Sequence record: NC_031010.1
Length of the DNA: 64,000 nucleotides
Reading direction: 5' to 3' (one strand)
Shown here: one piece after another, positions 14,908 through 34,526 of the stretch
Layout: each line of letters begins with the position of its first letter
Numbering within the stretch: position 1 is the first letter of the stretch
Program-made: the position numbers and the translations under genes
The notes under the pieces: model-generated
What the model was told of the DNA's origin: nothing
Seen by the model: only the letters and a program-made list of their open reading frames with translations
The model's database searches: none

Positions 14908-14941
14908 AATAAAAAGAAGAAAGGGTGCCCCGAAGGGCACC
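14908..14941 (-). terminator. Intrinsic terminator closing the fibre/radical SAM operon
   Basis: Minus strand GGTGCCC-TTCG-GGGCACC followed by CTTTCTTCTTTTTATTT. Confidence 0.9.
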
Positions 14942-14945: not shown

Positions 14946-15587
14946 TTATTCTACCGACGGATTAAACTCCGCCGCGTCGAGTGAGGCGTAATCCCCCTGC
15001 TCCGCAAATGCACGGATACGGGTTTTGTACGCGGTCAACTGAACGTGCAGCTGTGCGTTACGTGCGACAATCAGAGAGTACAGCATCTCAGTGTCTTTCG
15101 CTTCCCACTCTTCCAGCGCTTGGTTATCGGCAGTCACCCAATACTCCGGCACGGTGTTCGTTTGCACGAAGCCGGCCAGTGTGGTCAGGGTCTCACCTGC
15201 GGTCTGGAACATGTGGTCTTTGTACGCAATGTCAGCCGTGACCGCTTCACCGTACGCTGCATTAGTGGCCTGGAGTTTCTTGGCCAGCAGGGTATAGCAA
15301 TACGCTTTGGTCGACTGCAACTCTTTGAGGTAATCCTTCACCTGAATCCCCAGCACGTCTTTGATAAACGCTTTGGTTTGGCGTAGGGTGTAGTTGGCTT
15401 CGAACTGGGTCTGACCCTGCTCTTGCAACTGACGCAGTGCATCTTTCTCACTGAGTCCCTCTAAGAGTGCGTAGTGTAACCGCTTGGCCAGCGTAACTTC
15501 ACCGTTGGGGTCAAAGAACAACCCCGTGCGGTCAATCTGGCCATCGCCGTTTTCAAACCGAGCTTTTATCTCGTCAGCACTAAGCAT
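14946..15587 (-). CDS. Protein with C-terminal DUF4376-like (fibre-associated) domain
   Basis: IAYKDHMFQT...YWVTADNQAL...LIVARNAQLHVQLTAYKTRI...LDAAEF resembles the W.xADN pattern of DUF4376 proteins found beside phage fibre genes. Confidence 0.55.
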   Translation of the reverse strand: MLSADEIKARFENGDGQIDRTGLFFDPNGEVTLAKRLHYALLEGLSEKDALRQLQEQGQTQFEANYTLRQTKAFIKDVLGIQVKDYLKELQSTKAYCYTLLAKKLQATNAAYGEAVTADIAYKDHMFQTAGETLTTLAGFVQTNTVPEYWVTADNQALEEWEAKDTEMLYSLIVARNAQLHVQLTAYKTRIRAFAEQGDYASLDAAEFNPSVE

Positions 15588-16114
15588 TCTTTCTCTCCCA
15601 CGAATCCAACTTTGGTCAACATGTCATAGGACATGATTTCAAAGTCGATACGAAGATCCAGACGGTACTGCAAGTTCGGCAGTGGCTGGTCATTTTCTTG
15701 GAACGCCTGCATGAACATCATGTCATCGAAGTAATGACACGCGCTCTCTGGGTTACGCACCATCCAGACCGGGACATCCGGGAAGGACAGACACAGTGCC
15801 ACCAGAGAATCACCGCCACGATCGATGGTGCCGGTGCGCAGGATGTTTACCTTTGAAGCAGGGGCCGCCAGAATACGCGCTTCGAAACCCGGGTTACGCT
15901 TTTCGATTTCTGCTAACGAGTCGTGGCCGTTCTCCACGCACTGAATCGGCAGGACAACGTTAAGAGCAAAACGGTTAATCAAACGCAGCCAGTGATCGTT
16001 GAAATCATCGGCAGGCACGATAGCGTGAATGTTAAACAGCTTATAATGCTGTAAGAACGCTTCGATTTTGCGACTATCGTACTTCGTAAAATTCTGGAGA
16101 AGCAGGCTTTTCAT
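15566..16114 (-). CDS. Hypothetical accessory protein of the radical SAM cluster
   Basis: A 182-aa ORF overlapping both neighbours, suggesting translational coupling. Confidence 0.6.
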   Translation of the reverse strand: MKSLLLQNFTKYDSRKIEAFLQHYKLFNIHAIVPADDFNDHWLRLINRFALNVVLPIQCVENGHDSLAEIEKRNPGFEARILAAPASKVNILRTGTIDRGGDSLVALCLSFPDVPVWMVRNPESACHYFDDMMFMQAFQENDQPLPNLQYRLDLRIDFEIMSYDMLTKVGFVGEKECLVLTR

Positions 16115-17471
16115 TCTTGAATTGTTCCTTGCGGTCAGTTTGTTCCACAGCCATGGTCATCTCACGGATGGCGGTGACGTGTAAAGGCTGTTCTGCAGCT
16201 TCGCGGGTGAGTTTCTCTTCAACAGCAAAGTTGCGCTTCTGTTGGCACTGGTAACAGTTACAAACAGACTTGTCGTACTGCGATTCGTACGACCCGAAAC
16301 GTTGTTTCCACCACTGCGCCACTAAGAGCTTCGCGGTAGTCCAACCACACTGGCGACGTTCGCCGTGATACTCTTTACGAGCGTCTTCTTCACCGTCGCC
16401 GTTTTCATACGCTGCCGCCACACACGAGGCACACAGGTGCTTCGCTGGGCAACCGATGCACTGGTCAGGATACGACTTCCACTGTTCCTGAACTTCGGCC
16501 AGCAGTTTCCCGCCGTCGGTGTTAACGATTTGCTGACCTTCGAGTTTACCGATGGCCTGACGGGTGGTCACGGTAGACATGAAGCGGTTACACCCGAAGA
16601 TGTTCCGGTCAAAGCCCAGACAGGTCATGTACACCGTGGTACCGCAGTGAGGACGCAGACGTTGTGGGTCGTAGCGTACCGAGTCATCATGGATGAGCTT
16701 CTCACGCCAGTCCGGGTTCCACAGCTGGTCAACATCCAGACCGTCTGGCAGCACGTGACCGATTTCAGAGTTCTGGTCTAAGTGCAGACCCTTCTCAATG
16801 AAATACTCCGCTACTTCGATAAACTGGTTGGCAATCTCGAGTGCCATCTGGCGCGGTAACACGTCTTCGAAGACCACGTTACCGTACAGACGACCGCCCC
16901 CGGTCACATCAATCAGCGACTTCATCCCAGCACCGTACTGCATCAGCGTTTCTTTCGTGAAGGTGGCTTTGACCCCAATCTCACGAACGCCAATTTCTTG
17001 CAGAAGCTTATAACCGGCGACCGCTGCTTGGTAAGACCCTTGACGGGACGTGGTGAAGATACGGTACTTATCGTGGGTCTCAGGCAGACCATCGATAGAG
17101 ACACCGATCGACAGGTAATCTTTCCAACGGTTCAGAATCTCCAGCGCCAGCGGTTTGTCAAACAACGTCCCGTTGGTGGAGATAGAGAACACGTAAGGCA
17201 GGTTGTGCTTTTTGCACAGCTCTTCTGCGGTTTCGAAGGCCGCTTTCAGCAGCTTCGGCTGCATGAAGGGTTCGCCACCGATGATATCAATGATGATACC
17301 GTCGATACCTTGGTTCTTCGAGAAGAAGCGATGTTTATCGCGATTAAAGCAGGCGTGAATAAAATCAACGACATCAGCGACTTTGTTATTACGCGGATAC
17401 TTACGCTCGTAGCAATACTCACAGTCGAGGTTGCACGATAGGTTGGTGACTATCTGGTAGGTTGCATCCAT
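16074..17471 (-). CDS. Radical SAM/SPASM peptide maturase (CXXX-repeat target type)
   Basis: CNLDCEYC (CX3CX2C), GGEP, ISTNGT, VSIDG; SPASM cysteines HCG...GCNRF and CIGCPAKHLCASC...QCGW; extra C-terminal CNCYQC. Confidence 0.92.
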   Translation of the reverse strand: MDATYQIVTNLSCNLDCEYCYERKYPRNNKVADVVDFIHACFNRDKHRFFSKNQGIDGIIIDIIGGEPFMQPKLLKAAFETAEELCKKHNLPYVFSISTNGTLFDKPLALEILNRWKDYLSIGVSIDGLPETHDKYRIFTTSRQGSYQAAVAGYKLLQEIGVREIGVKATFTKETLMQYGAGMKSLIDVTGGGRLYGNVVFEDVLPRQMALEIANQFIEVAEYFIEKGLHLDQNSEIGHVLPDGLDVDQLWNPDWREKLIHDDSVRYDPQRLRPHCGTTVYMTCLGFDRNIFGCNRFMSTVTTRQAIGKLEGQQIVNTDGGKLLAEVQEQWKSYPDQCIGCPAKHLCASCVAAAYENGDGEEDARKEYHGERRQCGWTTAKLLVAQWWKQRFGSYESQYDKSVCNCYQCQQKRNFAVEEKLTREAAEQPLHVTAIREMTMAVEQTDRKEQFKNEKPASPEFYEVR

Positions 17472-17483
17472 CCCTATCTCCCC

Positions 17484-18368
17484 TTATTTTTTAATTGGAT
17501 TAAGCCAGTTCATGATGTAACGGTAGCCGTGCTCACCGATGGCCAGTGCAATCTTGTTGCAGCCACGGTCCACGACCATCTCAACGTTCTCAGGAACTTG
17601 CAGGTCGCCATTCGGTTGACTGACGATAATTTCACTACAGGCATTACACGCATCTTCTTCGAAGAACTTCTCGAGTTTGATGATGGTGTCACGCTTGTTA
17701 ATGCGGTTGAGCTTACGCATGTTGTCTTGCAGACGCTCAAAGCCGTACACGAAGTTTAACACGTGGTCAGGCGACAGCACTTTCTTCATCTGGTTATCGA
17801 ACAGGTAGTTCATGCCGAGGAAACCAAGATGGTGAATGGCGTCTTGCATTTTCATCATGCCTTCGTGCCAGCGCATGTCCCCGATCTTCTCACGGGTTAA
17901 CACTGACCAGAGGATAACGTTGTCCAGCTGGGCGATGACTTCAAACGCTTCGGTATCACCGGAACGAGCAAAGTCCATTAAACCACGGGCATCATCTTCG
18001 TAACCGTCGATGGAGACCACAACACGATGGAAGGTTTTCAAAAACTCGACTTGCTCTAAACGTAACTTACGTCCGTTTGTGAAAAGATAGTGCACGGCAG
18101 AAGGACGTTCTACGCGCATCATCTCGACCGACTCAACGAGTTTACGGTAAGACAGTAACGGCTCACCCCCCGTCCAGATGATCTCTTCCACACCGGGATT
18201 CTTTTTCAGTAACTCCATCATTGCCTCTTCATGGGTTTTACGAGACACGTCCCCTTTGACCATGTGAATCTCACCCGCACAAAACGAACAATTGAGGTTA
18301 CACTTCGACGTCAATGCTACGTTAATGGTCTTTGCAGGTGAGTAAACATCTTTACTTAACGTTCTCAT
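17484..18368 (-). CDS. Second radical SAM protein with a short Cys-containing C-terminus
   Basis: CNLNCSFC, TGGEP, FTNG, VSIDG; C-terminal ACNAC...PNGDL...GCN. Confidence 0.88.
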   Translation of the reverse strand: MRTLSKDVYSPAKTINVALTSKCNLNCSFCAGEIHMVKGDVSRKTHEEAMMELLKKNPGVEEIIWTGGEPLLSYRKLVESVEMMRVERPSAVHYLFTNGRKLRLEQVEFLKTFHRVVVSIDGYEDDARGLMDFARSGDTEAFEVIAQLDNVILWSVLTREKIGDMRWHEGMMKMQDAIHHLGFLGMNYLFDNQMKKVLSPDHVLNFVYGFERLQDNMRKLNRINKRDTIIKLEKFFEEDACNACSEIIVSQPNGDLQVPENVEMVVDRGCNKIALAIGEHGYRYIMNWLNPIKK

Positions 18369-19278
18369 CCGTCATTCCGTACAGGCGACGTTGGAAAGAG
18401 AACAGTGGGTCGGTGTCTCGTACATCTTCACCCGCCTTCAACAGACGTGGTGAGCGATACGCATCGTACAGTGCGTTAAGAACGGATTGACGCTCACCCA
18501 TGCGGATAAGGTCGTCCAGTTCAACCGGGGACGAAATAAACGGTTCCAGCGCAGCCTGTTGTTCTTCGGTGAACTCTTTCAGCTGTGACTGGAGCAGGAA
18601 GCGAATCAGTTTGCGATCATCCGCCGTGGAGTTCGGGACAGCGCCAAACTCAGTCTGACAGAGATAGGCCATCCACGGTTTACGGATGCGGAGTGTTTGC
18701 GCATGCGGGTCTGCGATGTAGACCCACTCTTGCTTCTCTGCATCCCATGCAAACTTATAACTAAACGCGAGTAAGTCTGCCAAGCAGTCGATATTCGCGG
18801 CTTCAAGGCCAGAGAACGGGTGATACATTTCACGGTCTTTCTCCACGCTTCCAGTGCCGGCTTCCACCAGTTTGAATAAGTGGGACCAGCTTCCGCAGTA
18901 ATCGCTGCTGTAGCTACGCACGCACACCGGACGCATGCCGAGTTCTTTAAAGGACTCGAACATCAGTTCCAGTGGTGCACTATAGTTCAGTACCGAATCT
19001 GTGAAAAAATACTTGTCGTTGACAAGCTTCCCGGTAAAACCAGAACCGCCTAAGGCGAACTGAATGGATTTCACGTTCAGCTTGCCCACCGTGGCCGCAT
19101 CAATCACGGTGTACTCTTTTTTCGTAAAGTTGCGACCGCGAAGCTTAGGCCATTCAAACTGATCCATGGCAATCAGCCGCAGCTCGTCGTTGATGTGTGC
19201 GTTAACACTGTCCGGTGACGAGATGTGAATTGGGTAATTCATGCTCGTGCGGTACGCAAGATGATCGTTACTCTTCAT
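18352..19278 (-). CDS. Hypothetical accessory protein of the radical SAM cluster
   Basis: A 308-aa ORF with SD AGGGG, lying between the precursors and the radical SAM genes and overlapping the latter. Confidence 0.7.
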   Translation of the reverse strand: MKSNDHLAYRTSMNYPIHISSPDSVNAHINDELRLIAMDQFEWPKLRGRNFTKKEYTVIDAATVGKLNVKSIQFALGGSGFTGKLVNDKYFFTDSVLNYSAPLELMFESFKELGMRPVCVRSYSSDYCGSWSHLFKLVEAGTGSVEKDREMYHPFSGLEAANIDCLADLLAFSYKFAWDAEKQEWVYIADPHAQTLRIRKPWMAYLCQTEFGAVPNSTADDRKLIRFLLQSQLKEFTEEQQAALEPFISSPVELDDLIRMGERQSVLNALYDAYRSPRLLKAGEDVRDTDPLFSFQRRLYGMTDENVK

Positions 19279-19290
19279 TAGGTTCCCCTG

Positions 19291-19500
19291 TTAACTCGGG
19301 AAGGAGACTGATTTCGCACCGCCTGAGCTACTCCAGCTACAGGTTCCGCCGCAGTTGTACGCGCCAGCACGAATCCCACCCAAGTTGTTGGTGTTGTTAC
19401 ACGTTCCACGGTTGGCGATATAATCAACCGCCTGTCCCGTGGTAATATAGCGTTCGATGCTCGCCACGCGGTTACCGATGTCTTTCAAGCTTACTGCCAT
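19291..19500 (-). CDS. Short Cys-containing precursor-like peptide P3
   Basis: MAVSLK leader, NTNNLGG box and CGGTCSW core motif; SD AGGAG. Confidence 0.8.
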   Translation of the reverse strand: MAVSLKDIGNRVASIERYITTGQAVDYIANRGTCNNTNNLGGIRAGAYNCGGTCSWSSSGGAKSVSFPS

Positions 19501-19509
19501 AGCCTACTC

Positions 19510-19938
19510 CTACGGTCCAGAACAGCCTGCTCCACAACTCCCGCCACAGCCACTACCGCAACTTCCCGAGCACCCGCCAGAACATTTGCCTGAACAGTTA
19601 CCCGAGCATGTGCCAGAACAACCGCCGGAGCAGCCGCCGCCACAGTTACCGCCACAGCTGCCACTACAACCACCGGTGCAGCTAGATGAACAGTTGCCCG
19701 AACAGGATGACGAACACCCAGACGAGCAGTTACCCGTACAGCCACCGGAACAGCCGTTACCACACGTCCAGCTACAAGAGCCGTTACAGTGCAGTGCCGC
19801 TGGGGTGAAGCCGTTGAGTAAATCAGCATTATTAGTAGTGCGTCCACCGATGTAGTTTTGCACGCCTGCTTCAGTTTTTAGTGCGGTGTTCTCAATATTG
19901 ACAACACGGTCACGCACCGATTTTAATGAAATCGCCAT
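19510..19938 (-). CDS. CXXX-repeat precursor-like peptide P2
   Basis: A 50-aa leader (MAISLK...NADLLNG) plus 23 perfect CXXX units rich in Gly/Ser, ending CSGP; SD AGGAG. Confidence 0.9.
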   Translation of the reverse strand: MAISLKSVRDRVVNIENTALKTEAGVQNYIGGRTTNNADLLNGFTPAALHCNGSCSWTCGNGCSGGCTGNCSSGCSSSCSGNCSSSCTGGCSGSCGGNCGGGCSGGCSGTCSGNCSGKCSGGCSGSCGSGCGGSCGAGCSGP

Positions 19939-19946
19939 TTCCGCTC

Positions 19947-20336
19947 CTAAGGGCTGCTACAACCAGCACTGCAGTTACTGCTACAGGTGCCAGAGCAACC
20001 GCTAGAGCAGCTGCTGCCACATGAACCTGAACAGCCGCTTGAACAGCCACCAGAACACGAGGATGAGCAACCTCCCCCGCAACCACCAGAACACGAGCCC
20101 GAACAGTTACCTGTACACACGCCGCTACAGCTTCCTGAGCAGCTCGAGCAACCGTGACTACAACCTGACGAACACGTCCAACTGCACGACCCGTTACAAC
20201 GGGCCCACGTATCAGGTTGGCCTGCCAATAGATTCGCATTGTGAACTTTGCTGTTCACCTGCCCCTCTACGGACGCGCCGGTTGCTGCTTGGACTCGGTC
20301 AAGACGGGCACTTAGTTCTTTAAGTGATATCGCCAT
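19947..20336 (-). CDS. CXXX-repeat precursor-like peptide P1
   Basis: A 46-aa leader (MAISLK...NANLLAG) plus 21 Cys (20 CXXX units and one CXX), ending CSSP; SD AAGGGAAGG. Confidence 0.9.
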   Translation of the reverse strand: MAISLKELSARLDRVQAATGASVEGQVNSKVHNANLLAGQPDTWARCNGSCSWTCSSGCSHGCSSCSGSCSGVCTGNCSGSCSGGCGGGCSSSCSGGCSSGCSGSCGSSCSSGCSGTCSSNCSAGCSSP

Positions 20337-20356
20337 TACCTTCCCTTTTTAATAAG

Positions 20357-20390
20357 ACACGGGCACTCGCCATATAGACGAGGCCCGTGT
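20357..20390 (-). promoter_or_regulatory. Inverted repeat with TATG in the loop, upstream of P1
   Basis: ACACGGGC/GCCCGTGT and CTCG/CGAG stems; the minus-strand loop reads TCTATATGG. Confidence 0.45.
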
Positions 20391-20399
20391 GTAATTATA

Positions 20400-21605
20400 T
20401 TAACGTGAACCGGCATCAGCCTGTACATCGTCACGTGTGGTCAAGTTGGCGTTGACGTGCACGTTTGCCTGAACCACGCCGCCATACTGCTTGTGCAGGT
20501 ACTGGGTGTGTGGATCGGCTGCAGACAGGTGGTTAGCGAGCGTCTGGTTAACACTGGCGATGTTGCCCTCGGTCGTGGTGACACGACGGGTCAGTGCGGT
20601 CAGGTCAACACGCAGCTGGTCAATCTGCTGCTGTGCGTCACCGGCTCCGGACTTGAGGTCATCAATCTGGTCTTGCAACCCAACGGCCGTTTGCTTCAAC
20701 TCATTCACGGTTTTCTGTAACGTCAATACCAGTGAATTGAGGTTGGCCACAATCAACGTCATCTTCTGGTAGTTTTGGTCTACCGTGTTCAGTTGGTCGT
20801 TGAAGGTGGTCAGCGAACTGACGATGGCATCAATGCGCCCACCCAGTGCCGTATCAGCAGCCTTAAGGTCGCCAATCTGGACGAGGGTTGCATCGATAGC
20901 TGCCTGCACGCCGGCAATCAACGCACGGATTTCGGTTGCGGTCAAACCATCAATATCGTGGATATCAAGGTTGTGCACGTTACCCGTGGCATTGATGTGG
21001 GCATTCAGCGCGTCCAAGAAGTTATTCTTGATATCGCCGATGATGTCTTTGATTTTCTCAAGCTGAACGGCATCGCCTGAACCAATCGCATCCAGAATAC
21101 CCGAGAGCAGGGTAATGACGTATTCAAAACCAAAGATATCGCCAACGTCTTTAAACGCCGGGGCACCCGGTAGCGTATCCGGGAAATCGATTAAGTCGGC
21201 AAAGTTCACCTTCTTATTATCAATGCCCAGAATCGCAATCGCATTTTCAATCGCAGTCACGTTCGCAGACATTGGCCCACCGACAACCTGAGCGGTCACG
21301 ATGATGTCTGTTGGGATGCTGCTGTTGGTCACTACAACTGCCATCACGACTTCTTTGTTGCCCGAGAGCTTCATGTAGGCCGGATGAGCGAAAATCAGTT
21401 CGTAGTCGGTACCACGTTTATACGGCGTGGTGGGCGAGTTCGTGGCACGCAGTTTAAAACTGTCTGCGTAAAACGGACCTGCCGGAAAAGCAAAAGACCG
21501 GTTAACTTTACCGGAACCCAAGACCACGGGGATACTTACCGCGTTCGATGTCAGAGTTCCTTTAAGGTCAAGCGGATACTGGAAAATAATATCACTCATC
21601 TCCAA
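20400..21605 (-). CDS. Virion fibre-like protein with long coiled coil
   Basis: Shared N-terminal PFY...G.DY domain, HINATGNVH, a long heptad region and C-terminal HLSAADPHTQY (phage fibre motif). The start may be ATG 21599. Confidence 0.7.
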   Translation of the reverse strand: MEMSDIIFQYPLDLKGTLTSNAVSIPVVLGSGKVNRSFAFPAGPFYADSFKLRATNSPTTPYKRGTDYELIFAHPAYMKLSGNKEVVMAVVVTNSSIPTDIIVTAQVVGGPMSANVTAIENAIAILGIDNKKVNFADLIDFPDTLPGAPAFKDVGDIFGFEYVITLLSGILDAIGSGDAVQLEKIKDIIGDIKNNFLDALNAHINATGNVHNLDIHDIDGLTATEIRALIAGVQAAIDATLVQIGDLKAADTALGGRIDAIVSSLTTFNDQLNTVDQNYQKMTLIVANLNSLVLTLQKTVNELKQTAVGLQDQIDDLKSGAGDAQQQIDQLRVDLTALTRRVTTTEGNIASVNQTLANHLSAADPHTQYLHKQYGGVVQANVHVNANLTTRDDVQADAGSR

Positions 21606-21643
21606 GCTCCCTTACGAGAGGGCATCCCTGCCCTCACCAGTGG

Positions 21644-24600
21644 TTAAGACGACAAATTACTCGTTGGGATTAACATAAGATTGATGGTTACCTCACCCAG
21701 CGTGACCATCTTTCCGTCAGGCCCGAAGAACTTCGAGGCGACAACGACTTCCCGGTTCGACCCATTCGCCCGCTCCAAGAACGGCGGACAATAGCTGATT
21801 TCCGGAGCCACCACACTCACTACCCCTGTGGTGTTTGCCACCGGAACATAGACATGGGAGACGGTCTCCAACACGTTGAGGTTACCGGACTGCGTACCCT
21901 GGTCTGAGGTGAATGCCACCACCGATGTCCCGCTCGAGCGAATTAACTCGCGCTCGGTCGTCCCGTTCCAATCGTAGGCAATAAAGGCAATGTGGCAGAT
22001 GGTGCCACCGGCGGTACCTGCCTGAATGACTTCGATCCCAACCGTGTGCTGCCCGTTAGACACCGGGAAGTCCTGGGTGGCGAGCGCGTTTGACCCGTTC
22101 GAGGTAATGCCGGATGCCACACGCACGCCATCAATGTAGACGTGACACATGTCATCCACCGCAAACTTAAGTCGCAGCGTGCCCCCGGTGGTGGTCACTT
22201 TGAACTTGGTCGCATACGTACCGTAGCCCGGAATCGTCCGTGGGTTGATGTCAATCCAGATAAGCCCCAACGCATTTGCATCCGGGTTCTCCGCTGCTGT
22301 CACGGCCACTGCACGGGCAGGAGCCCAGAACAGCTCAGGCAACACTGCCCCGGAATACCACGGCTGGGAAGCCGGGACATAACGGTTAATCAGCGGACGA
22401 GACAACAATGATCCCACCGCCAGTGACAGTGCGGACTGACCCACGTACCCATCACCCGAGGTCGCAATCGGTAACGGTTCCAGCAGACCGAGCGGTGACT
22501 CTGCCCGTTCACGCACCACGTTCGAGCCGTGGCTGTACGCAACCCCCTCATGCTCCTCTAACTGACGTACCGCCCCCAGACGTTTCACCGGGGTAATGTT
22601 CTCCTCGATGATACGGCTGCTGTCGGTCTTGACGTAACCCACGTAAAGCAGGTTACTGCTGTCAGGGTAACGTTCGGTACTGACCCGGTACCGCGCCTTC
22701 GTGGTGCCTTCGTCTGGGTAGACTTCAGCGTGGAAATAGAAGGTCTGGTTTCGGTAGTCACTGAACGCCGACGAGAAGTCAATGCTGTACTGGTCGAGCA
22801 CGTACTCTTTCGAGTTAATGAACAGTCGCTCTGACTCGGTCAGGTAAAGAATCCACCCTTCCGCCGTCTTCACGCCCGCCAACACCACCGGTTGCGCATT
22901 CGCCGGGGAACCAAACGGACTGGCCATGAAGTCCGCAATCGGATACGCGTCGCCTGAGGAGAACACCGGGTCCAGTTTGAAATACGAATTCACCATCGCA
23001 TTCAAATCTTTCACCCACACCCACGTGTTTGGGCTGTACGTTGGTCGGTCAAGCCCCAGTGCCCCGGTGGAGCTGGTCCACTGGTTACCGGTCAGGGTCA
23101 ACACCGCACGGAAGTTCAATGCACCCCCATTCCCGACTTGGGCGATACGCAGCACGGACGGCAGATAGAGCACAAACTTCTGCCCATCGTTGGACACGAG
23201 TTGCGGCTGACCAAAGCGGCGGTCTTTTCCACCAAAGCTGAAATCCAATCCGACGTTGGCGATGTTCAAGTCAAGGTCGTTCTGGAACGTCAACAGTTGG
23301 AGGGTGCTGGAGCTAAACGCGAGAATCCCGTTGGAAACCGACGGGTACATCACAAAGTAGTAATGGTCGATTTTATTCACACCGTCTACAAAGCGTTGTG
23401 CCGTGGCCTGTCCCAAGAAGAGCTGCTGCGGTGTCCCAATCGCAAAGCCCCACAGTGCGACATACAGTTTCCCGATTTGGTCAGCGGCCATCAGTCGCTC
23501 GGATGCGTAGCCGTTCGCTGCACCCGCTGGGGCGTTAGCCAACATGATACTGCGGACTTTCGCCCACTCGGTATCGTTCAGCGTCAGTTTGTCGGCGGTA
23601 AAGTTCGGGTTCCCGGTCACGTTCTTGTACTGCACCGTTTCAGGCTTAGTAAAGAAGCACCCGTTCAGCGTGCCTTTATCTGCCGCATTCACTTTCACCA
23701 TCGCCAGCTGGGACATCGCAGCGTAGGTTGCCGTGGTGATAACACGCCGGTTGTTGGTTGGACCAAAGCCCCCGTAACCCGGTACGTCGTAATCCGTGTC
23801 GGTTGAATACAACACCTCAACGCACAACGCATCCTTGGTACCGGTGAGCCAGATGGCTTTAGAGTCCCCACCGAAGAACAGCGGGTAGGCCATGCCAGAG
23901 GCGTACACAGACCCACGTCCTTGGTCGAGTTTGGTGGTGTTACCCACAACCGCACCTGTCGTCACATCGGCTGACAACGAGTCGTAATGGTCACCCCCGC
24001 CCGGAACACCCATCGTGACTATCTGCACCGGGACATCACTGTCATTACCAACCGAAAGCACAGCGACCTTGTCATCGTGGTGTGCCACAAAGGCACGCTG
24101 GTTGGCTTGGGTCCCTGTCCACTTCAGTGGGTAGTTCGTGGTCAACAAATCCACGCCGGTTTTGTACTTCGCACCGGTATCCAGTAACTGCAGTGGGAAG
24201 ATTTCCGGGTGCTCCAGTGTCACCGTCAGGGTATCGAAGTCGAGCGTGAATGTCGTGTACCAGTTCTTGAAGCTCAATGACTCGGTTGCTTTCGCCAGCC
24301 AAATCGTTGGCGTCATTGCCACCCGTAACACTTCATCCTCTTGCCCCAACACCCGGTTACACGTTGGCCCGTGCACCAGATTGCGCCCTACCGTGAAGGT
24401 ACTGAGTGCGGCTGGGCTGATGTACGCTACCCGGTCGGTCTCGGTGTTGGCGGTGTCGTACCCCCCTTCGGCACGGAGCAGTAACCACGAACCTGCCACG
24501 CCCTTCATCCCGTTCAAGGTTTCAAGGGTAAAGGCCACGTCTTGTGCGCCGATGCTATTGAGTGAAACCGACGCCAAGGCCACACGGTAACTGTCGTTCG

Positions 24601-26731: not shown

Positions 26732-26763
26732 GTGTAAACTCCCACTTCTTAAAGAAAACGGAA

Positions 26764-26809
26764 GCCGTCCCCCGAGAGGGACGGCGCTTACGGACGGGTT
26801 GTCCGTAAG
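26764..26809 (-). terminator. Tandem hairpins between fibre genes; the second on the minus strand is terminator-like
   Basis: CTTACGGAC/GTCCGTAAG and GCCGTCCC/GGGACGGC, the latter followed on the minus strand by TTCCGTTTTCTTT. Confidence 0.6.
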
Positions 26810-26818
26810 GACTTCCCG

Positions 26819-29800
26819 TTAGTTCCAAACACCGAGGTCGGTGCTGACCCCTTCTTCTGTTCGCATGATACCCGTGACCCAGTCCCACATTGCGGTGGTC
26901 AGGTTAAACGGATGGTATTTGCACAGGAAGAGGGTTGGGGCAGTGTCTTCCATCACCACAACCGCAGCATCGTCATTAAAGTCGATGGTGCCCACAGTCT
27001 GTGCCCCGCTCTTAAAGATAAGTGTGGACTCTAAGAAGAACGGGCTGGCAATGGCCAGTGGGACAAACTCAATGTACAACAAATCACCGGCAAAGCCTGT
27101 GACCGTTGGCGTCAAACGACTGCTTGCCACGGCCCCGTTCTGCGGGCTGTTGTTGTGCACCGATTTCCCATTGACATAACTGCGGAAGTTGTAATTGGCG
27201 TTTACCGTCCAATCCAGCGCATCGAAGTCCGCGGGGGCTTCCACGACCAAGGCAAAGCGTCGGCTGTACGCAGCACCCCGATACGGGTTGGCTGTGCTTG
27301 ACCAGACTTTCGCCCGGGTAATCTCGGCACCCACACGTTGCTTCGACAGGATACGATCCGGATGTGCTACCAACGGACTGTACTTACTGCGGGACGGCAT
27401 AACCGCATTACCGGCAGTGGACAGTCCGATAAACTCCGTTGCCCCCGACAGCGCTGCCCAGTTTGCAGGTATCCCACCACTGAGTAACTTCTGAACCACT
27501 CCACGACCATTCCCCTGTACCGCGTAATCGTTGGCACGGGTGTAGGCTTCAAAGAGGCTACGGAAGTAACTGTAGTTGTGGTAATCGGCAGACGGGTAGA
27601 TACCGGCATGCAGGATATGTTGACTTGTGGAGGCCAGCTCCTTACGGTTAAAGCCCACAAAGCCATTCATGCAATCCCGAACATCAAACGGCAGTTCGTA
27701 CGTCACTTTGCGAATAATCGGTGTTGACCGGTTGTCCTCAAACCGCACCAGTTCCACACGCAAGGTGTTGGTCTTCGGTACGTAGCGGTAACGCACGATA
27801 TAACGCGACGCTCCTGTCTCCTTGACTTCCTCACCCCAAACACTCGGGTCAGTTGCCTCCACCAAACTCATGTCGTACGGGTGCACATCGAACGGCGTAA
27901 CCGCCGGTGCTGCACGGTTAGCACTGTTGGCAGCGTTTACGGGCAACTCCGGCATGTACCCGTATTCGGCCTCATTGGTGAACACGTTGATGTGGAAGAA
28001 TTTGTGCTGACCGTTACGCGCTTTCTGTGCAAAGGTCAACCACAAGTCCAACTGGGTGTTACCCAGCACACGACGAATCGGAATATACAGCGCCAGTGAG
28101 CCCTCGTACGTGAGCAGGTTGTTCTCATACGGGTTCGCCGGGGTCATCCACTGCTGCGGACCACTGTACCGGGTATCCATCCACATCGTCAGGGGGCCGG
28201 TACCGTCAACCGTCGGTTTGAGTGTGAGCACACTCGCTGCGAGGTTTGCTGTACCCGCCACACCCGCCACAATGTAGTCAGGTTTGTCGGAGGCAATGGG
28301 CAGACGTTTCATCCCCGGGTTATCCGAGAGATACCAGTCACTCGACTCAGGGACATGTGCCGGAATCAGATTCTGGTGCGTACCCATCTCTTGGAACTGA
28401 CCAAAGTCTGCCACCGTGTCAAACTCAACCGTTGTCGTGGTCATTCCTGCCGGACCACAATCCACATACCCGACGTAGGTCTGGGTAATGCTGATGTCGT
28501 TGGAGGCAATCGGTTCAGCACGACCAAACAGTGAATTGGTGCTCATGTTGAGATACACAAAGTGGCGATTGTTACGCGGGTTGATAAACTCGCTTAACTG
28601 GGCCAGCTTCGTATCAGGCGATGATGCCACGATAGGATAGTTGTTATCCCAAATCTCAAATGCCAATGCTGCCGGTTTGGTGCTGTCGTTGCAATCCGCC
28701 CGTAAGGCGACCGTGTGCACCGGGGATGCCGTATCCACATCAAATACCCCGTCAACCGTCGGCGCACCGGAAGTCACGAGGGTACCGTTGATGTAAACAC
28801 TGATGTTTCCCCCGGCCGAGGCGATCACCCTCAGACGGCCTGAGGAGCACGCTACGCGCTCTTTAGCCAGAACTGAGATAATGGACAGATCGCCCTGCTG
28901 CGCGGCAGTGAGGCCGATTGTGCGTGCGTATAAAGGAAGTGTGGTGACACTGGAGGTTAAGGCCAACTGCGTATTGTGCAGAACACCTTTTGCCCAGTTA
29001 CGCTCGATGACATTCGTCGGCTGGTACCAGTTGAACATCGGGGTGGTTTCCAAGTTCACCGACCCGGTTACCCGTCCTTCTTTTCGCCCACCGTTGGCCA
29101 TGTAGAAGTATTTCAAGTCCTGCACTGACAACGCCAGCTTGGAACTCGCTACCGACCATGTTGCCCCACCAATCACCGCATAGTCCGTCACGGCTTTGGG
29201 GTTGGCCCCTTTGAGGTTCTCTGCGACGGCTGCCAATTGCAGTTGCAGTTGATACAACACATTGGGTGCCACACCCCGACCGTCTGCCAACGAGGCTTCG
29301 GTTGGGGCAATACGAATCACCCCAAGGTCGGCTTCAGTAGCATTCGGGATATTGAGGGAGGCCCACGCATGTTTGTGGCCTTTGTCAGACTTGCCCGCGA
29401 GTGCGGTTTGCAAATCACCTGACAACGGTTTGTCCACATCCGCCGTGTTATCCGCATCCCCTAACCCGATGTCCGCTTTATTGAGGACACGGGCACCGTC
29501 GTCCATGGCCACCGAGTTCAGGCGGGTCGCTTTCGGGACGAACTGCCCAAGCGTCGTGTCGTACGCAGCCACCGCACCCGGTGTCACCGCTTGCCCAACA
29601 ACCACATCGCTCTTCGCCGTCACCAGCGTCACCGCGCCGTCGGTTGTGGTCGTTGCATCAGGCAGGGTGACATTCCATTTCACGGGGTCAGCTTTAGAGC
29701 CTTTACCCGTGGGAGTCAGGCCTTGCGTTTCAGACTGGACATACAGCTTGGAGTCGTCCGGGTCAGTCCCGCCCCCGTCATCCTCGGCTTGGTAGTCCAT

Positions 29801-30853
29801 CAGCGTAGTGGTGGTAAGTAACGTTACCCCGTTCACCGAGAGCTTATCCATGCCAAGTGCATTGCCTGAAGACTCGATACGCATGACGTTCGAACCCGCC
29901 ACCCATTCGAAATACGCCACATCACCTTTATAGCCTGCCCGCAGTGCAATCCCGCCCGACGTGGTCAGGTCAAAGCCGGTGTCCGTAAAGAGCACGCTGG
30001 ACGCCCCGTTCTTGGATTTAAAGAGTGGACGGTTGGCCTGTACCAACTGCACAAACGTGCCTTGGATATCTTTAAACGCCCACGTCTCGATATACTTGTC
30101 GATATCGGACTGCTGCAAACCCAGTGCCCGAATCTCTGCGGTTAAGGCCCGCAGGGTTTTTCCGTAGGCGAGGAAGGTATCCGCCGCTTTCAGGGAAATC
30201 GGGTGTGCGCCCATTTGGGTGACATTGGTTCCGTGGGGGTTTTTAGCATTGACGTGTGACGGGTAATCGAAGGCTTCAATCTCTGTGTGCAGACTTTCGA
30301 CGGTGACTTTCAGCTGGTCAAGTTTGGCTTTGATTTGATCGTTGGCCGAACCGGCATCGAGTTCCACGTCATGAATCGCAGACGCCACGTACTTCTTGTT
30401 CAGCAGGTCATGCCACGAGGTGGCTGCCGGCATCACGGGATACAAAGAAGGGCGGTTGTCCACATTCAGCCAGCGTGCACTGGTTGGGTTGTTCAAATAC
30501 TTCACTAACGTGTCGAAGGATTCCAACAGTCCGTCGTAAAATGTCCCGCCCAAGTGCTGACCGGTGAAAATCAGTGAGCCCTTGATGGCCGGGTTAATCA
30601 CGTTAACCCCGCAGAACACCGGACTGGCCACTGAGTCGTCCAGCTCTGTCAGCTGATAAGCCAACTCGTAATCGACGCCCTTAGTCAGAGGGTTAGAGGC
30701 AGTTGCCTGCCTCACGGAAAACCCAGACTGGAAGAACGGACGGTGCTGGAGTACCAGCACACGTTCCGAGGCGATGTCCGATTCGAGAATACGCTCCTCA
30801 GTAAACTGATTGGTCTTGGCGGTGCCTTTCCAATCGTAAGGAATCGCACTCAT
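26819..30853 (-). CDS. Long tail fibre protein (1344 aa)
   Basis: N-terminal PFF...GVDY, HVNAKNPHG, PDATTTTDGAVTL, KADIGLGDADNTADVDKPLS and PNATEADLGVI. Confidence 0.8.
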   Translation of the reverse strand: MSAIPYDWKGTAKTNQFTEERILESDIASERVLVLQHRPFFQSGFSVRQATASNPLTKGVDYELAYQLTELDDSVASPVFCGVNVINPAIKGSLIFTGQHLGGTFYDGLLESFDTLVKYLNNPTSARWLNVDNRPSLYPVMPAATSWHDLLNKKYVASAIHDVELDAGSANDQIKAKLDQLKVTVESLHTEIEAFDYPSHVNAKNPHGTNVTQMGAHPISLKAADTFLAYGKTLRALTAEIRALGLQQSDIDKYIETWAFKDIQGTFVQLVQANRPLFKSKNGASSVLFTDTGFDLTTSGGIALRAGYKGDVAYFEWVAGSNVMRIESSGNALGMDKLSVNGVTLLTTTTLMDYQAEDDGGGTDPDDSKLYVQSETQGLTPTGKGSKADPVKWNVTLPDATTTTDGAVTLVTAKSDVVVGQAVTPGAVAAYDTTLGQFVPKATRLNSVAMDDGARVLNKADIGLGDADNTADVDKPLSGDLQTALAGKSDKGHKHAWASLNIPNATEADLGVIRIAPTEASLADGRGVAPNVLYQLQLQLAAVAENLKGANPKAVTDYAVIGGATWSVASSKLALSVQDLKYFYMANGGRKEGRVTGSVNLETTPMFNWYQPTNVIERNWAKGVLHNTQLALTSSVTTLPLYARTIGLTAAQQGDLSIISVLAKERVACSSGRLRVIASAGGNISVYINGTLVTSGAPTVDGVFDVDTASPVHTVALRADCNDSTKPAALAFEIWDNNYPIVASSPDTKLAQLSEFINPRNNRHFVYLNMSTNSLFGRAEPIASNDISITQTYVGYVDCGPAGMTTTTVEFDTVADFGQFQEMGTHQNLIPAHVPESSDWYLSDNPGMKRLPIASDKPDYIVAGVAGTANLAASVLTLKPTVDGTGPLTMWMDTRYSGPQQWMTPANPYENNLLTYEGSLALYIPIRRVLGNTQLDLWLTFAQKARNGQHKFFHINVFTNEAEYGYMPELPVNAANSANRAAPAVTPFDVHPYDMSLVEATDPSVWGEEVKETGASRYIVRYRYVPKTNTLRVELVRFEDNRSTPIIRKVTYELPFDVRDCMNGFVGFNRKELASTSQHILHAGIYPSADYHNYSYFRSLFEAYTRANDYAVQGNGRGVVQKLLSGGIPANWAALSGATEFIGLSTAGNAVMPSRSKYSPLVAHPDRILSKQRVGAEITRAKVWSSTANPYRGAAYSRRFALVVEAPADFDALDWTVNANYNFRSYVNGKSVHNNSPQNGAVASSRLTPTVTGFAGDLLYIEFVPLAIASPFFLESTLIFKSGAQTVGTIDFNDDAAVVVMEDTAPTLFLCKYHPFNLTTAMWDWVTGIMRTEEGVSTDLGVWN

Positions 30854-30863
30854 TTAGTTCTCC

Positions 30864-33800
30864 TTAATCACGAAGCACCACGCCGGTGTATCGTTTATTC
30901 ACTTTGTCGGTGTAAAGGATGAGGTCAGCCGTGGAGATGAAGCGCGGAATGCCACTGTAGTGCTTATCGGTGTTTGCTTGCACAATCGCCGTACGCAGTT
31001 GGGTGTCAGTCATCGCCAGCATCTCGGTGGTCAGCACGCCTTCAATGTACCGTGCACGTTCCAGACCCGAGAAGTTTTCTACAAAAGAAACGAGGGTGTT
31101 GTAAACGTTGTTGTCCGACATTGCAGCCGGGGCGTCAACGCGACAACGGAACAGGCCACTAAAGCTCCCACCAACGCCGTAGTGACGTTTTAGGTTAACA
31201 TTGGTAGCTTCGGCTAAGGTAATGCCTGCGGCGCTGAGACGGCTGTTCAGGTCGATTGTCTGCGTACCCATGGTCAGGACGCCGGTGGCGAGGTTTAAGG
31301 TCACCACCACACTCGACGGTAACGACACCGTAAAGCGCAACGTCGCCGCATCCGCAAACACCGCGACCGAGGCAGCCAGACTGGCCCATGTGTTCGCATT
31401 GTTCACCGGATAGTCAGAGGCCCCAATGATAATCTGCTTGGGACTGCCGTAGTTAATGGCAAACCCTAAGTGACACAGATTACCGTTCACATCCGAGATG
31501 TAGTTCGAGCGACTCACCAACACCGAGAACCGGTTAAAGTTTCCGAGACTGTCGGTGTAGCCCAATCCCATGACCTCGAACAGGGTGTCATCGTTTCCGG
31601 TGACATCGGTTGGGATAAACGTGATGGCCATATCCTGCATCGCGTAGTACGGCGTAATACACTGCATGATAAGGTGGTCAGCAGCATTCACACCGCCTGC
31701 ACTGAACACCAGACCCTCGTAGGCGGCGTTTAACGCGCCCCAACGCACGTTCTCACGGCTACGCCATCCATTCACACCCCGAGCACGCCAGTCTGCGTCA
31801 CGACGCAGTGAGCCCTTCATTCCGCCTACCCACTCTTCACCTTTGTTGTTAAAGGTAAAGCCGAACTCTGCCTGTGTCATGGCCCGGTGACTGTGGTCGT
31901 TTTTCGACGCCGCATGTTCTACCAGTTCACGGAACTCACCCAACCGTGTTACATTACTGATGGTTGAATCCGACACACTGCTGTCGTCCGTGGTAAAGCT
32001 GCCAATTTCCGTCAGCGTTGCCGACTCAGGAAGCTTGGTCAAACTCACCCGGTACAGCCCGGCGTTGTTCACAACGTCCACGTACACAAAGAACGTTTTG
32101 TTGCTGGGTGAAGACGTCAGCTGAGTCAGGTTAAAACTCCCCAGTGGAACGTCATAACGCAAGCGCACGAAATAGGTGTTGGCTTTGATGCTCACCATCC
32201 AGCCCGAGGCGGTTAACGCATTCGGAATGGCGGTTGCACCCGGGGCACCGTAACGGATGATGTCAATCACGGCACCGGAGTCAACACTGCCTGCGGTGGT
32301 GGCCAGGGCGTCGGTACGACTCACTAACGGGGTCACGGCACCGGCATCGAGTGCCGCTGTGGCATCATCAATCAGCTTAGCGGTTTTCACCAACCCTTTG
32401 ACCTTGTCCGTACCCGCCACAATACCGAGCTGTGCCGGTGTGTGGGTATGGGTCGTGTCAGCGTACTTATCCAACTCCGTCTGCTGCGCGGTGGAGACCG
32501 GCAACAGTGTATCCGGGGTGTTGGACACGGCACTCAGGTTAAAGGTGAGCTTGTCGATGGTCACAGACGAGGAGAGCGCCATACCGTTGATATTGGCTTT
32601 GGCCAACAACAGCTTACCGGTGAACAGGGCATCGAGCTTACTGAGCAGTGCCGGGGTCGCCAGTAGGTCATCGCTGGTTCCAAAGTCCACGGTCAGTTTA
32701 CGCAAGGCCGAGGTATCCCGATTCACGTTGCTCGGTGCTTGCCACTGCACCTTAAACGGCACGGTTTGAATCCCGTTACCGTTAATGGTAAAGGTCGCGG
32801 TATTCTCGCCGTAGAACAGCCCATCCCCGCTGCCTGTGACGCCCGGCAGATACGGAATCACGGTGGTTGGGTCAAGCAGAGGCTTACCTTTCCACTGCAG
32901 CTTACGGCTGTCGCTGTACAGCACCAGTTCATTGGTACCCGCTTTCGCCGAGGCGTTCTGGGTGGTCACATGCCGTTGGAAGGTTTTTGACAGAAGACGA
33001 ATCATCTTGTCATCGACGGTCCCAATGGTTTCCACGCCGGCCGTTTCATTGGCGGCTGACGTTGATGTGATTTGACCCAAGCCCGGCTGCAGGGTGAATG
33101 CCCCCGGCACCGGGGTGTTATTCCCGATACGCTGAATGCGGTTGTTCAGATCCGTTGCTTTCGGTAACAGGTTATTGATGTACACGGCCAGTGCCGCTTG
33201 TGTGCGACCAAACGCCAAGGCCGAGTCAAAGGCAATGTCGTTTAACGGCAGTGCACCAATTGAACCCGGGGTATCCTCGTGCGGGTCGTTCGTGTCCCCC
33301 ACGTGGTCGTGTGCTGGCGCACCCCGGTACAGTTCGTTGACAATCTCGGCGTAGTCTTTCAGTAATGCTAAGACCGGCGCGTTGTCATCTGCGCTATACC
33401 CGTATCCCGGGAAGTCATTAAACGAGAACGTGTCATTAACGCCGACATCGAACTGCAAACGCATGTCGGTTGTGCGGTCGCTGAGCTTCGTGCGAACATT
33501 AAACAGTGTCCATTCTGCAGAAACCGACGCCGGCGGGTTTTGAATATCCACCGTGTAGTTAAGGACGGTTTGTCCTTCCTGCGTCACAACCACCGACACC
33601 GTGTCGTGCGTCTTGCTGTTAATGACCGTAACCGTAAAGGGCTTATTAAAGATGGCCAAGCCTTTTCCGGCGGCAGCGATAGGGTAATAGGCGTACGTGT
33701 TGTCACCAGCGTAGAGTGCCAGCTTCAAATCACCGTCCATGTACCGCAGATGCAGTCCCGCAAAACCCCCACCCCAATAGTTTCGCAAATACATCGCAAA

Positions 33801-34526
33801 AATAGGTGGCGTTACTTGGCTATACAACGACTTCAGATTGAAATTGACAATCAGTCGGTAGTCACCCATCCCGTTTGAATTATACCCAGTAATGGTATAA
33901 AACGGCCCGGTGGGTTTCTTCTTAACCAAATAACTGAGGTCGTTCTGGTAAACCACTTCGCCACGACTGAAAAAACCTTCGTGGTTGGTTGTGGGTACAG
34001 ACGAGGTGGTGTAGGGGTCAGGCAGGGCGGGCTTTTCGGCAATCTTCTTACCGATGGCCGCGATAGCCTGCATCAGTTCTAACTCACCTTGCCAGTTGGC
34101 TTTGTCGAATTGGATATCGACCGGTGGGAAATAGACTTCCCCAATCACTTCTTCCCACTGACAGTTAACCGGGTACTTGTCGGCGTTTGCCTGACGTTCC
34201 GCTGCGATTTGTGCTGGGGTGGCGATGCCACTACCGACGGCATGGTAGTCCACGGCAAAGTTATTGACGTAATCTTCGTTGGTTATCCAGATGCTGGCAT
34301 GGATGTTTCTGCCGGTACGTTGGATGCCGGTCATGAAGCGATGCCCAAACACGTAGTCACGACCGAATTTCAGTGTTTTACCGTTAGAGGTAACCACGAC
34401 AGAGCCGGTGTAAAAAGGGGCGTTTGCAGGAATGAGCACTCGGTACTTCGAACCGATAGGCGTTACCGCCTCTTGGGGAATGAGATTCCCGCTTTCTTTC
34501 TGATGTGGGTCAAAGACGACTGCCAT
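30864..34526 (-). CDS. Long tail fibre protein (1220 aa)
   Basis: N-terminal APFY...GRDY, HVGDTNDPH, DSALAFG, SNTPDTLLPVS and THTHT..GTDKVKGLV. Confidence 0.8.
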   Translation of the reverse strand: MAVVFDPHQKESGNLIPQEAVTPIGSKYRVLIPANAPFYTGSVVVTSNGKTLKFGRDYVFGHRFMTGIQRTGRNIHASIWITNEDYVNNFAVDYHAVGSGIATPAQIAAERQANADKYPVNCQWEEVIGEVYFPPVDIQFDKANWQGELELMQAIAAIGKKIAEKPALPDPYTTSSVPTTNHEGFFSRGEVVYQNDLSYLVKKKPTGPFYTITGYNSNGMGDYRLIVNFNLKSLYSQVTPPIFAMYLRNYWGGGFAGLHLRYMDGDLKLALYAGDNTYAYYPIAAAGKGLAIFNKPFTVTVINSKTHDTVSVVVTQEGQTVLNYTVDIQNPPASVSAEWTLFNVRTKLSDRTTDMRLQFDVGVNDTFSFNDFPGYGYSADDNAPVLALLKDYAEIVNELYRGAPAHDHVGDTNDPHEDTPGSIGALPLNDIAFDSALAFGRTQAALAVYINNLLPKATDLNNRIQRIGNNTPVPGAFTLQPGLGQITSTSAANETAGVETIGTVDDKMIRLLSKTFQRHVTTQNASAKAGTNELVLYSDSRKLQWKGKPLLDPTTVIPYLPGVTGSGDGLFYGENTATFTINGNGIQTVPFKVQWQAPSNVNRDTSALRKLTVDFGTSDDLLATPALLSKLDALFTGKLLLAKANINGMALSSSVTIDKLTFNLSAVSNTPDTLLPVSTAQQTELDKYADTTHTHTPAQLGIVAGTDKVKGLVKTAKLIDDATAALDAGAVTPLVSRTDALATTAGSVDSGAVIDIIRYGAPGATAIPNALTASGWMVSIKANTYFVRLRYDVPLGSFNLTQLTSSPSNKTFFVYVDVVNNAGLYRVSLTKLPESATLTEIGSFTTDDSSVSDSTISNVTRLGEFRELVEHAASKNDHSHRAMTQAEFGFTFNNKGEEWVGGMKGSLRRDADWRARGVNGWRSRENVRWGALNAAYEGLVFSAGGVNAADHLIMQCITPYYAMQDMAITFIPTDVTGNDDTLFEVMGLGYTDSLGNFNRFSVLVSRSNYISDVNGNLCHLGFAINYGSPKQIIIGASDYPVNNANTWASLAASVAVFADAATLRFTVSLPSSVVVTLNLATGVLTMGTQTIDLNSRLSAAGITLAEATNVNLKRHYGVGGSFSGLFRCRVDAPAAMSDNNVYNTLVSFVENFSGLERARYIEGVLTTEMLAMTDTQLRTAIVQANTDKHYSGIPRFISTADLILYTDKVNKRYTGVVLRD

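Follow-up and report, generated by a model that had tools for sequence, protein, structure and literature searches.

Do three short cysteine-rich genes that lie beside two radical S-adenosylmethionine (radical SAM) enzymes in a jumbo phage encode a peptide natural product, or do they encode a part of the virion? The question is raised by a stretch of 64,000 nucleotides, called here the window, which corresponds with 100% identity to positions 124001-188000 of NC_031010.1, from Erwinia phage vB_EamM_Kwan (the sequence match covers bases 14946-21605 of the window). Kwan has a genome of 246 kb and belongs to the genus Wellingtonvirus, among the SPN3US-like jumbo phages. On the minus strand of the window, without a change of strand, there are in order four fibre-type genes (gp188 to gp185), three small genes called here P1, P2 and P3, and then gp181, gp180, gp179, gp178 and gp177. 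A sequence-only reading of this DNA had placed the cluster in the tail-fibre module and not in a locus for a secreted ribosomally synthesised and post-translationally modified peptide (RiPP). This assignment is supported here by synteny, by distant tail loci, by fusions to fibre proteins, by the internal position of the supposed leader in relatives and by the DUF4376 chaperones. P1 to P3 are probably small proteins of the fibre apparatus, with a Cys module that would be cross-linked in the cytoplasm by radical SAM enzymes.

P1 (129 amino acids (aa); 19947..20336), P2 (142 aa; 19510..19938) and P3 (69 aa; 19291..19500) share an architecture in which a short helical N-terminal segment leads to a junction motif, L-x-G followed by C-x-G-x-C-S-W-x-C. 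The segment is ~46 aa long in P1 and ~50 aa in P2, and is followed in these two by a CXXX repeat with 21 and 23 Cys, respectively. The repeats extend over 80-90 residues, with Cys at every fourth, sometimes every third, position among Ser, Gly and Thr. P3 has the N-terminal segment and the junction motif C-x-G-x-C-S-W only. Both P1 (23.7 bits) and P2 (24.4 bits) pass the cutoff of 20 for TIGR04114, which corresponds to PF27846 (Cys-Xaa-Xaa-Xaa repeat target protein). P3 lacks the repeat and does not match TIGR04114. All three match phrog_6085, a family of unknown function, with E-values of 5e-35 for P2 and 7e-25 for P3. Neither a conserved Gly-Gly nor a hydrophobic signal is seen in P1 to P3, in agreement with the earlier statement that the precursors lack a double-Gly or Sec signal. 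Lys and Arg are present in the N-terminal segments.

Each of the three genes is preceded by a purine-rich ribosome-binding stretch. Between Kwan and pEa_SNUABM_11 the differences per codon position are 17/11/72 in P1 and 13/10/72 in P2, with 58 synonymous versus 20 non-synonymous codon changes in P1 and 66 versus 10 in P2. P1 and P2 are real genes in the reading frame used here and, judging from this pattern of substitution, are under strong purifying selection. GenBank has other open reading frames (ORFs) over P1 and P2, one on the opposite strand at 19478-19855 (+) and one in the wrong frame at 19910-20239 (-). Similar mis-annotation is found in SPN3US, Huxley, CR5, Asesino and pEa_SNUABM_11. 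None of the three true Cys-repeat ORFs of SPN3US (L002, 12949-13341, 13352-13756 and 13772-13978) is annotated, and the 'gp166' call is in the wrong frame (L002, 13425-13760).

Two long types with 20-23 Cys each are present in 6 phages of 5 genera, and the P1 orthologues of five other phages have 21 Cys each. The short P3 type was recovered by the search script in two of the six phages. SPN3US and Kwan have P3 also, and the other phages of the six have an annotated 207-210-nucleotide coding sequence (CDS) at the P3 position. The spacing from Cys to Cys in the SPN3US-like P1 and P2 types is 4 in 203 of 239 intervals and 3 in 33 of 239, and the cores of these types are composed of 30% Ser, 26% Gly, 25% Cys and 8% Thr.

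Relatives of gp179, the larger of the radical SAM enzymes, were sought in IMG/VR, where the scan gave 301, and 83 loci (L008-L090) were examined. The locus counts include near-duplicates and reduce to 26 clusters at 60% identity. A Cys-repeat ORF is found on the same strand beside the gp179 relative in 80 of the 83 viral loci. Two of the exceptions are cut off <1 kb upstream of the radical SAM gene, and the third has the ORF when a second ORF caller is used. Enzyme and Cys repeat are thus linked, and an enzyme-substrate pair is therefore indicated.

The gp179 relatives in unrelated phages and prophages are 23-47% identical to it and are located in tail modules, each with an adjoining Cys-repeat ORF. 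In L008 (36% identity) the P2-type baseplate genes J and I are followed by a 236-aa ORF, a small radical SAM gene, a gp181-like gene and a large radical SAM gene. In the product of the 236-aa ORF, the similarity to N-termini of tail-fibre PHROGs covers residues 4-72 and that to phrog_6085 covers residues 66-176. In L009 (45% identity) the module recurs, with three Cys genes, after fibres with a Peptidase_S74 domain. A 384-aa ORF in L015 matches tail-fibre and collar-fibre PHROGs over residues 3-314 (1e-55 to 1e-30) and then ends in a Cys tail; here the gp181-like gene and two radical SAM genes separate the fibre gene from the tail sheath gene. Likewise, the 437-aa and 401-aa proteins of L017 and L018 have fibre N-termini and a C-terminal phrog_6085 match. 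The tail-fibre PHROG matches of the module-bearing relatives range from 1e-6 to 1e-55, and in each case the fibre sequence and the Cys module are part of one predicted protein.

The same context is found at genuine members of the TIGR04115 family, since the TIGR04115 loci examined, L031 and L075, are also in phage tail modules. The cutoff of this family is passed by the radical SAM enzymes of L075 (596 bits) and L031 (493 bits). In L031 the enzyme gene comes after tape measure, Dit and minor tail genes, and in L075 after baseplate wedge genes. In the Cys-repeat ORF of L031 (535 aa) the Cys repeat, ~260 aa long, stands between an N-terminal part and a globular C-terminal part of ~190 aa. The immediate upstream neighbours were also identified in ten further sequence clusters, and in five of these they are central-fibre, tail-fibre or baseplate genes; tail-fibre or baseplate neighbours are seen in L019, L017, L018, L032 and L065. 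The Cys-repeat 'cores' of relatives are up to ~350 residues long, with 346 in L100 and 243 in L069.

In bacterial species-representative genomes there were 469 radical SAM hits, generic radical SAM enzymes included, of which 80 loci were kept. The best of these bacterial relatives are only 22-30% identical to gp179, and a Cys-repeat ORF is present in 17 of the 80 loci. Neighbouring genes were tested for ten, and six have baseplate, tape-measure, minor-tail or fibre genes. The idea that phages borrowed the module from non-phage bacterial RiPP loci is unsupported, the bacterial Cys-repeat loci being tail modules wherever the neighbours can be named.

The N-terminal segment of P1 to P3, which in a short protein resembles a leader, has a different setting in these relatives. 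Positions 6-50 of the phrog_6085 profile align inside long fibre-fused proteins, and because it is there an internal segment the supposed 'leader' is not a leader. A profile made from the three Kwan segments found 17 representatives among 1.8 billion proteins. Fifteen of these are short (50-210 aa), and in them the junction motif comes next or the sequence is cut off just before the motif. The remaining two are very long repeat proteins and are outside the junction-motif count. These two, P0109 (5212 aa) and P0112 (808 aa), have 11 and 5 repeats, respectively, that match profile positions 5-31, and P0112 also has weak matches to DUF6808 and to a phage tail needle knob family. A C-terminal addition is seen in an SPN3US-like metagenomic phage on a 222-kb contig (L010, 10001-10633), in which a 210-aa P3-type protein has ~145 extra C-terminal residues with no family match and is followed by a gp181 homologue.

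Within the SPN3US-like group the cluster is conserved as a unit. SPN3US, Huxley, EarlPhillipIV, CR5 and Asesino all have the Kwan order of fibre genes, gp185, three Cys genes, gp181, two radical SAM genes, gp178 and gp177. Five genera thus preserve this order, while the genes that lie downstream of it (endolysin, a DUF1353 protein and others) are shuffled. A gp181 gene is present in 62 phage records at 40-46% identity, across which gp179 is 59-67% identical. In several SPFM Salmonella phage records the large radical SAM protein, of 363-421 aa, matches gp179 over a short N-terminal stretch only, which could be due to assembly quality or to real divergence.

In the virion proteome of SPN3US, gp167-173 are present and gp161-166 are absent (PMC5694885). 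The presence of gp167-170 in virions, with gp161-165 undetected, is the pattern that would be expected of fibres on the one hand and enzymes and chaperones on the other. The homologues of P1 to P3 could not have been detected in that study, because the three ORFs are unannotated and gp166 is in the wrong frame.

The larger enzyme, gp179 (465 aa; 16074..17471), is of radical SAM/SPASM type, with a PF04055 match, and is related to the CXXX-repeat, PapB and CteB enzymes. Its best family match is TIGR04115 (113 bits, E 2e-32), over profile positions 7-341 of 359. It also matches the PapB family with 107 bits over profile positions 12-319 of 330, which is below the cutoff of 340, and among solved structures CteB is the best match (5wgg, E 9.5e-10). 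On sequence grounds gp179 is plainly assignable to the TIGR04115 lineage despite failing the cutoff. An alignment of 13 relatives has a CxxxCxxC motif with invariant C13, C17 and C20, and seven further invariant Cys in the C-terminal part, from C276 to C375; no separate SPASM match is listed in the Pfam scan. The radical SAM core begins at residue 12, aligned to CteB residue 106. Since CteB has ~100 N-terminal residues where gp179 has almost none, gp179 is without a built-in recognition domain.

The second enzyme, gp180 (294 aa; 17484..18368), has a radical SAM domain (PF04055, E 1e-14) and no recognisable SPASM domain, and its nearest solved structures are SkfB and YydG. It is adjoined by gp181 (308 aa; 18352..19278; phrog_8030), a clade-specific protein whose family has 15 clusters only in 5.8 billion proteins. 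The AlphaFold2 (AF2) model of gp181 is confident, with a predicted local distance difference test score (pLDDT) of 82.7. With this model Foldseek gave no PDB match at E<0.001 and, in BFVD, the orthologue of gp181 only, and a phmmer search of gp181 against PDB sequences had no matches. The remaining small gene of this part of the cluster, gp178 (182 aa; 15566..16114; phrog_7988), is found in 6 loci and is confined to SPN3US-like phages and L009.

Genes like gp181 are found only in the 12 loci L008-L019, a branch that includes the SPN3US-like phages. A second radical SAM gene is present in all 12 of these loci except L017, and a second radical SAM-like ORF is present also in L089. The aromatic junction motif stands at the start of the core in 10 of the 12. 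No single-enzyme locus has it there; 10 of 68 do contain the pattern, but inside the repeat only. This co-occurrence suggests that gp180 and gp181 act at the junction and that gp179 acts on the repeat. At loci with genuine or near-cutoff TIGR04115 enzymes, an ORF of ~108 aa without a Pfam match lies between the Cys-repeat gene and the radical SAM gene (L031 8568-8891, L075 8582-8905 and L032 8610-8927). A relationship of gp181 to this ORF was rejected (hhalign probability 0.5%).

Taken as a mechanism, P1 to P3 would be structural proteins of the tail-fibre or baseplate-periphery apparatus and not leader-core peptides made for release. Disulfides cannot form in the reducing cytoplasm. It is there, before or during fibre assembly, that the Cys repeat would be covalently cross-linked by gp179, most likely through thioethers from Cys sulfur to carbon, a chemistry suggested by the homology of gp179 to enzymes like CteB and PapB, its nearest characterised relatives. 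The product would be a thin and rigid rod or knot, resistant to reduction and oxidation and to proteases. A 12-residue beta-solenoid for the repeat is a speculation and carries no weight in this argument. Probably gp180 and gp181 act at the aromatic junction motif or present the substrate, gp177 would serve as a fibre chaperone of the DUF4376 type, and the finished pieces may dock on the fibre complex, possibly through gp185. Both the docking partner and the division of labour among gp179, gp180, gp181 and gp178 are thus proposals that we infer from the arrangement of the locus and its relatives.

A released peptide has to be weighed against this mechanism. The three genes are small, their products have a conserved N-terminal segment ahead of a Cys-rich end, and radical SAM/SPASM enzymes of RiPP-maturase lineages are encoded beside them. 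The NCBIfam names, a radical SAM 'peptide maturase' with a 'target', also fit a product like a ranthipeptide or sactipeptide, freed by lysis and acting on other cells or phages. The sequence-only reading was right that no leader peptidase, ABC exporter or immunity gene is recognisable; the Pfam, NCBIfam and PHROGs scans of the cluster proteins found no peptidase, exporter, transporter or immunity family. A lytic phage needs no exporter, however, and release by lysis would account for having none. What makes a released peptide quite unlikely is the structure of the relatives, with the 'leader' inside long fibre proteins, 'cores' of up to ~350 residues and fusions to tail-fibre domains and C-terminal globular domains. 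Wherever neighbours can be named they are tail, fibre or baseplate genes, and among the proteins scanned there is never a peptidase or transporter. In addition, the N-terminal segment is rare, and all 15 of its short representatives reach the junction motif or stop just before it. Of the alternatives this one is damaged most, by the fusions, by the length of the cores and by a tail context that does not vary. The Cys-rich proteins could also be metal- or iron-sulfur-binding, with free cysteines, while the radical SAM enzymes act elsewhere, for example on the large fibres, or only share the need for cluster handling. A protein with 25% Cys together with Ser and Gly would suit this, there is no acidic acceptor for a PapB-type reaction, and AF2 sees no fold. 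It is nevertheless very unlikely in light of the Cys-repeat ORF beside this radical SAM lineage in 80 of 83 loci from 26 sequence clusters, and of the curation of target and maturase as a pair by NCBIfam, with P1 and P2 passing the target cutoff.

A further alternative keeps the cluster in the fibre module. The Cys module might be a transient cap or clamp that aids trimerisation or maturation of the fibre and is then shed or cleaved, so that it is absent from the finished virion. In most of the fusions the Cys module is at the C-terminal end of the fibre protein, the site of intramolecular chaperones such as Peptidase_S74, and S74 fibres are neighbours of the module in L009. P2-type phages keep a fibre-assembly gene between the fibre and the sheath, and in L015 it is this slot that the enzymes occupy. 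Transient chaperone caps have been published on fibres that have DUF4376 chaperones (PMC10579305). Against a cap, the repeat of L031 is internal, with a globular domain of ~190 aa after it, and one P3-type protein has a C-terminal domain. Two dedicated radical SAM enzymes would be costly for a disposable part, and no protease was found in the cluster with Pfam, NCBIfam or PHROGs. A shed cap is unlikely on this evidence.

The reading preferred here, in which P1 to P3 are cross-linked parts of the fibre apparatus, has several observations against it. P1 to P3 themselves are without a match to a tail-fibre family, having phrog_6085 only, although their relatives do have such matches. The cores of the Kwan type have no Asp or Glu, the acceptor residues of PapB-type enzymes, and the score of gp179 is far below the TIGR04115 cutoff (113 versus 350 bits). 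The Cys region is not modelled with confidence by AF2; for P2, with a 24-sequence alignment, the pLDDT is 48 and only the helices at 5-19 and 23-29 are confident. The incorporation of P1 to P3 into virions is presumed from context; the SPN3US virion study was blind to these unannotated ORFs. In five of the ten further viral clusters the neighbours have no match or match only a PHROG of unknown function, and four of the ten bacterial neighbours are without assignable function. Finally, a conserved hairpin lies between the fibre genes and P1.

This hairpin bears on the earlier argument that the cluster follows the fibre genes with no U-tract terminator between 20336 and 20400. A terminator scan of this 63-base spacer between gp185 and P1 did find no canonical U-tract terminator, and to that extent the statement holds. 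The argument for a single transcript is weak, since the spacer contains an intergenic RNA hairpin (20357..20390, minus strand) that is stable (dG -27.7 kcal/mol, z = -3.98). In Kwan it has a poor U-tract. A hairpin is kept at the equivalent position in SPN3US, Huxley, EarlPhillipIV, CR5 and Asesino despite sequence divergence, and two of these phages, Huxley and Asesino, have a real U-tract after it. Co-transcription of the fibre genes with P1 is not secure because of the stability and conservation of the hairpin and the U-tracts in two of the phages. The hairpin could be a terminator, a processing site or a part of a phage promoter. In all six phages there is a UAUG within the hairpin loop. 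A scan for sigma-70 promoters was uninformative, with 6 sites where 6.3 were expected; phages of the Kwan type use their own polymerases.

Upstream of the hairpin are the four fibre-type genes, all on the minus strand. These are gp188, a 1220-aa fibre or baseplate-periphery paralogue that is annotated as a virion structural protein (30864..34526; homologue of SPN3US gp170), gp187 (1344 aa; 26819..30853; homologue of SPN3US gp169), gp186 (1695 aa; 21644..26731; homologue of SPN3US gp168) and gp185, a 401-aa coiled-coil virion protein (20400..21605; homologue of SPN3US gp167; phrog_2163, E 1e-101). They had been described from the sequence as four paralogous fibre genes. This is clear for gp186 and gp187 (E 1e-26 over ~540 N-terminal residues); the remaining links are weak (5e-5 for gp188 and gp187, and 5e-4) and one comparison gave none. 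In SPN3US, gp168-170 are a published family of paralogues, candidates for the baseplate or fibres and present in virions, and gp168 is a tail protein that has been likened to phiKZ gp131 (PMC5105663, PMC5694885). The four Kwan genes belong to this family or resemble it.

SPN3US gp167, the homologue of gp185, is an abundant non-head protein of the virion (PMC5694885). The fibre motif H-x4-DPH-x-QY that had been noted at the end of gp185 is present, ~33 residues before the C-terminus. Whether gp185 could carry P1 to P3 was also raised. The sole hint in that direction is locus L032, where the fibre gene just before the Cys-repeat gene is, like gp185, a match to phrog_2163. Possibly gp185 is the docking partner or carrier.

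The last gene of the cluster, gp177 (213 aa; 14946..15587), had been called DUF4376-like. The Kwan protein itself has no Pfam match at E up to 5, DUF4376 included. The link to this family was recovered only by way of its SPN3US orthologue gp161, which matches DUF4376 (PF14301) with 36.9 bits against a cutoff of 25; gp177 is 33% identical to gp161 (E 8e-36), in an alignment that spans the DUF4376 region. DUF4376 proteins have been studied experimentally as tail-fibre chaperones (PMC10579305), those of the Alteromonas phages V22 and A5 being examples (PMC7289586, PMC10579305).

The minus-strand unit is closed, before the endolysin gene, by a strong bidirectional hairpin like an intrinsic terminator (14924..14941), which has 7 pairs, 6 of them G-C, and a T-rich tail on both strands. 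Two genes past the cluster, at 13460-14146 (-), is a DUF1353 protein annotated as 'tail assembly chaperone', and in EarlPhillipIV and CR5 a DUF1353 gene comes directly after the cluster on the same strand. Two strong bidirectional terminator-like hairpins of 12 pairs each, at 12043-12070 and 13365-13392, flank a small plus-strand gene at 12767-13360. At 21-12029 (+) of the window there are 12 consecutive genes, gp160-gp171, annotated as (putative) virion structural proteins. Many of these are of similar length, ~270-470 aa, and resemble the paralogous head-protein family B of SPN3US.

The closest known system is the family pair TIGR04114/TIGR04115, defined by comparative genomics, in which a protein with Cys at every fourth position is likewise encoded beside a radical SAM enzyme and to which gp179 has a near full-length profile match. 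The Kwan subclade differs from this pair in its second radical SAM enzyme, in gp181, in the aromatic junction motif and in the sub-cutoff score of gp179. The tail context of TIGR04114/TIGR04115 was not found in the family name or in the literature searched. PapB, the freyrasin enzyme, and CteB, the thermocellin enzyme (5wgg/5why), share with gp179 the radical SAM lineage and Cys-rich substrates. In comparison with these two, gp179 has a score below the PapB cutoff and lacks the N-terminal recognition domain, and the Kwan cores are without Asp or Glu. Substrates of the Kwan type also belong to fibre-type proteins and can reach hundreds of residues, and no peptidase or exporter accompanies them.

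With the DUF4376 systems of phages V22 and A5 (PMC7289586, PMC10579305) the cluster shares a DUF4376-type gene that closes the fibre block, and in SPN3US this protein, gp161, is undetected in virions. Radical SAM enzymes and Cys-repeat proteins are absent from the V22 and A5 systems, unlike Kwan. The fibre genes belong to the family of phiKZ gp131 and SPN3US gp168-170 or resemble it. The Cys-repeat and radical SAM module is, among cultured phages, confined to the SPN3US-like branch, phiKZ itself not having been searched. In the capsid chainmail of HK97, autocatalytic isopeptide bonds cross-link the capsid. The likeness is in covalent bonds that stabilise a part of the virion assembled in the cytoplasm, and the difference is that in Kwan the element would belong to the tail fibre and be made by dedicated radical SAM enzymes. 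Literature searches aimed at this system or at its SPN3US and DUF4376 context turned up no paper that treats the CXXX family or the modification of phage fibres by radical SAM enzymes; a cyanophage paper that mentions a radical SAM maturase is unrelated.

The whole CXXX-repeat and radical SAM family may be a widespread means by which phages and prophages build a stapled Cys-ladder shaft or knot of the fibre, and not a system for peptide natural products, a possibility put here at slightly under an even chance. If this is true, the NCBIfam pair that is now read as a RiPP system would be re-assigned, with hundreds of viral and prophage members. The cross-link would be the first enzyme-installed one of RiPP type known in a virion structural protein. 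Radical SAM peptide chemistry would then make a part of a virus particle, which would add a new class of post-translational modification to phage structural biology, and would explain how a fibre assembled in the cytoplasm can be covalently stapled without disulfides. The SPN3US-like jumbo phages would gain three structural genes that have been missed or mis-framed in their annotations and have for this reason been invisible to the published virion proteomes.

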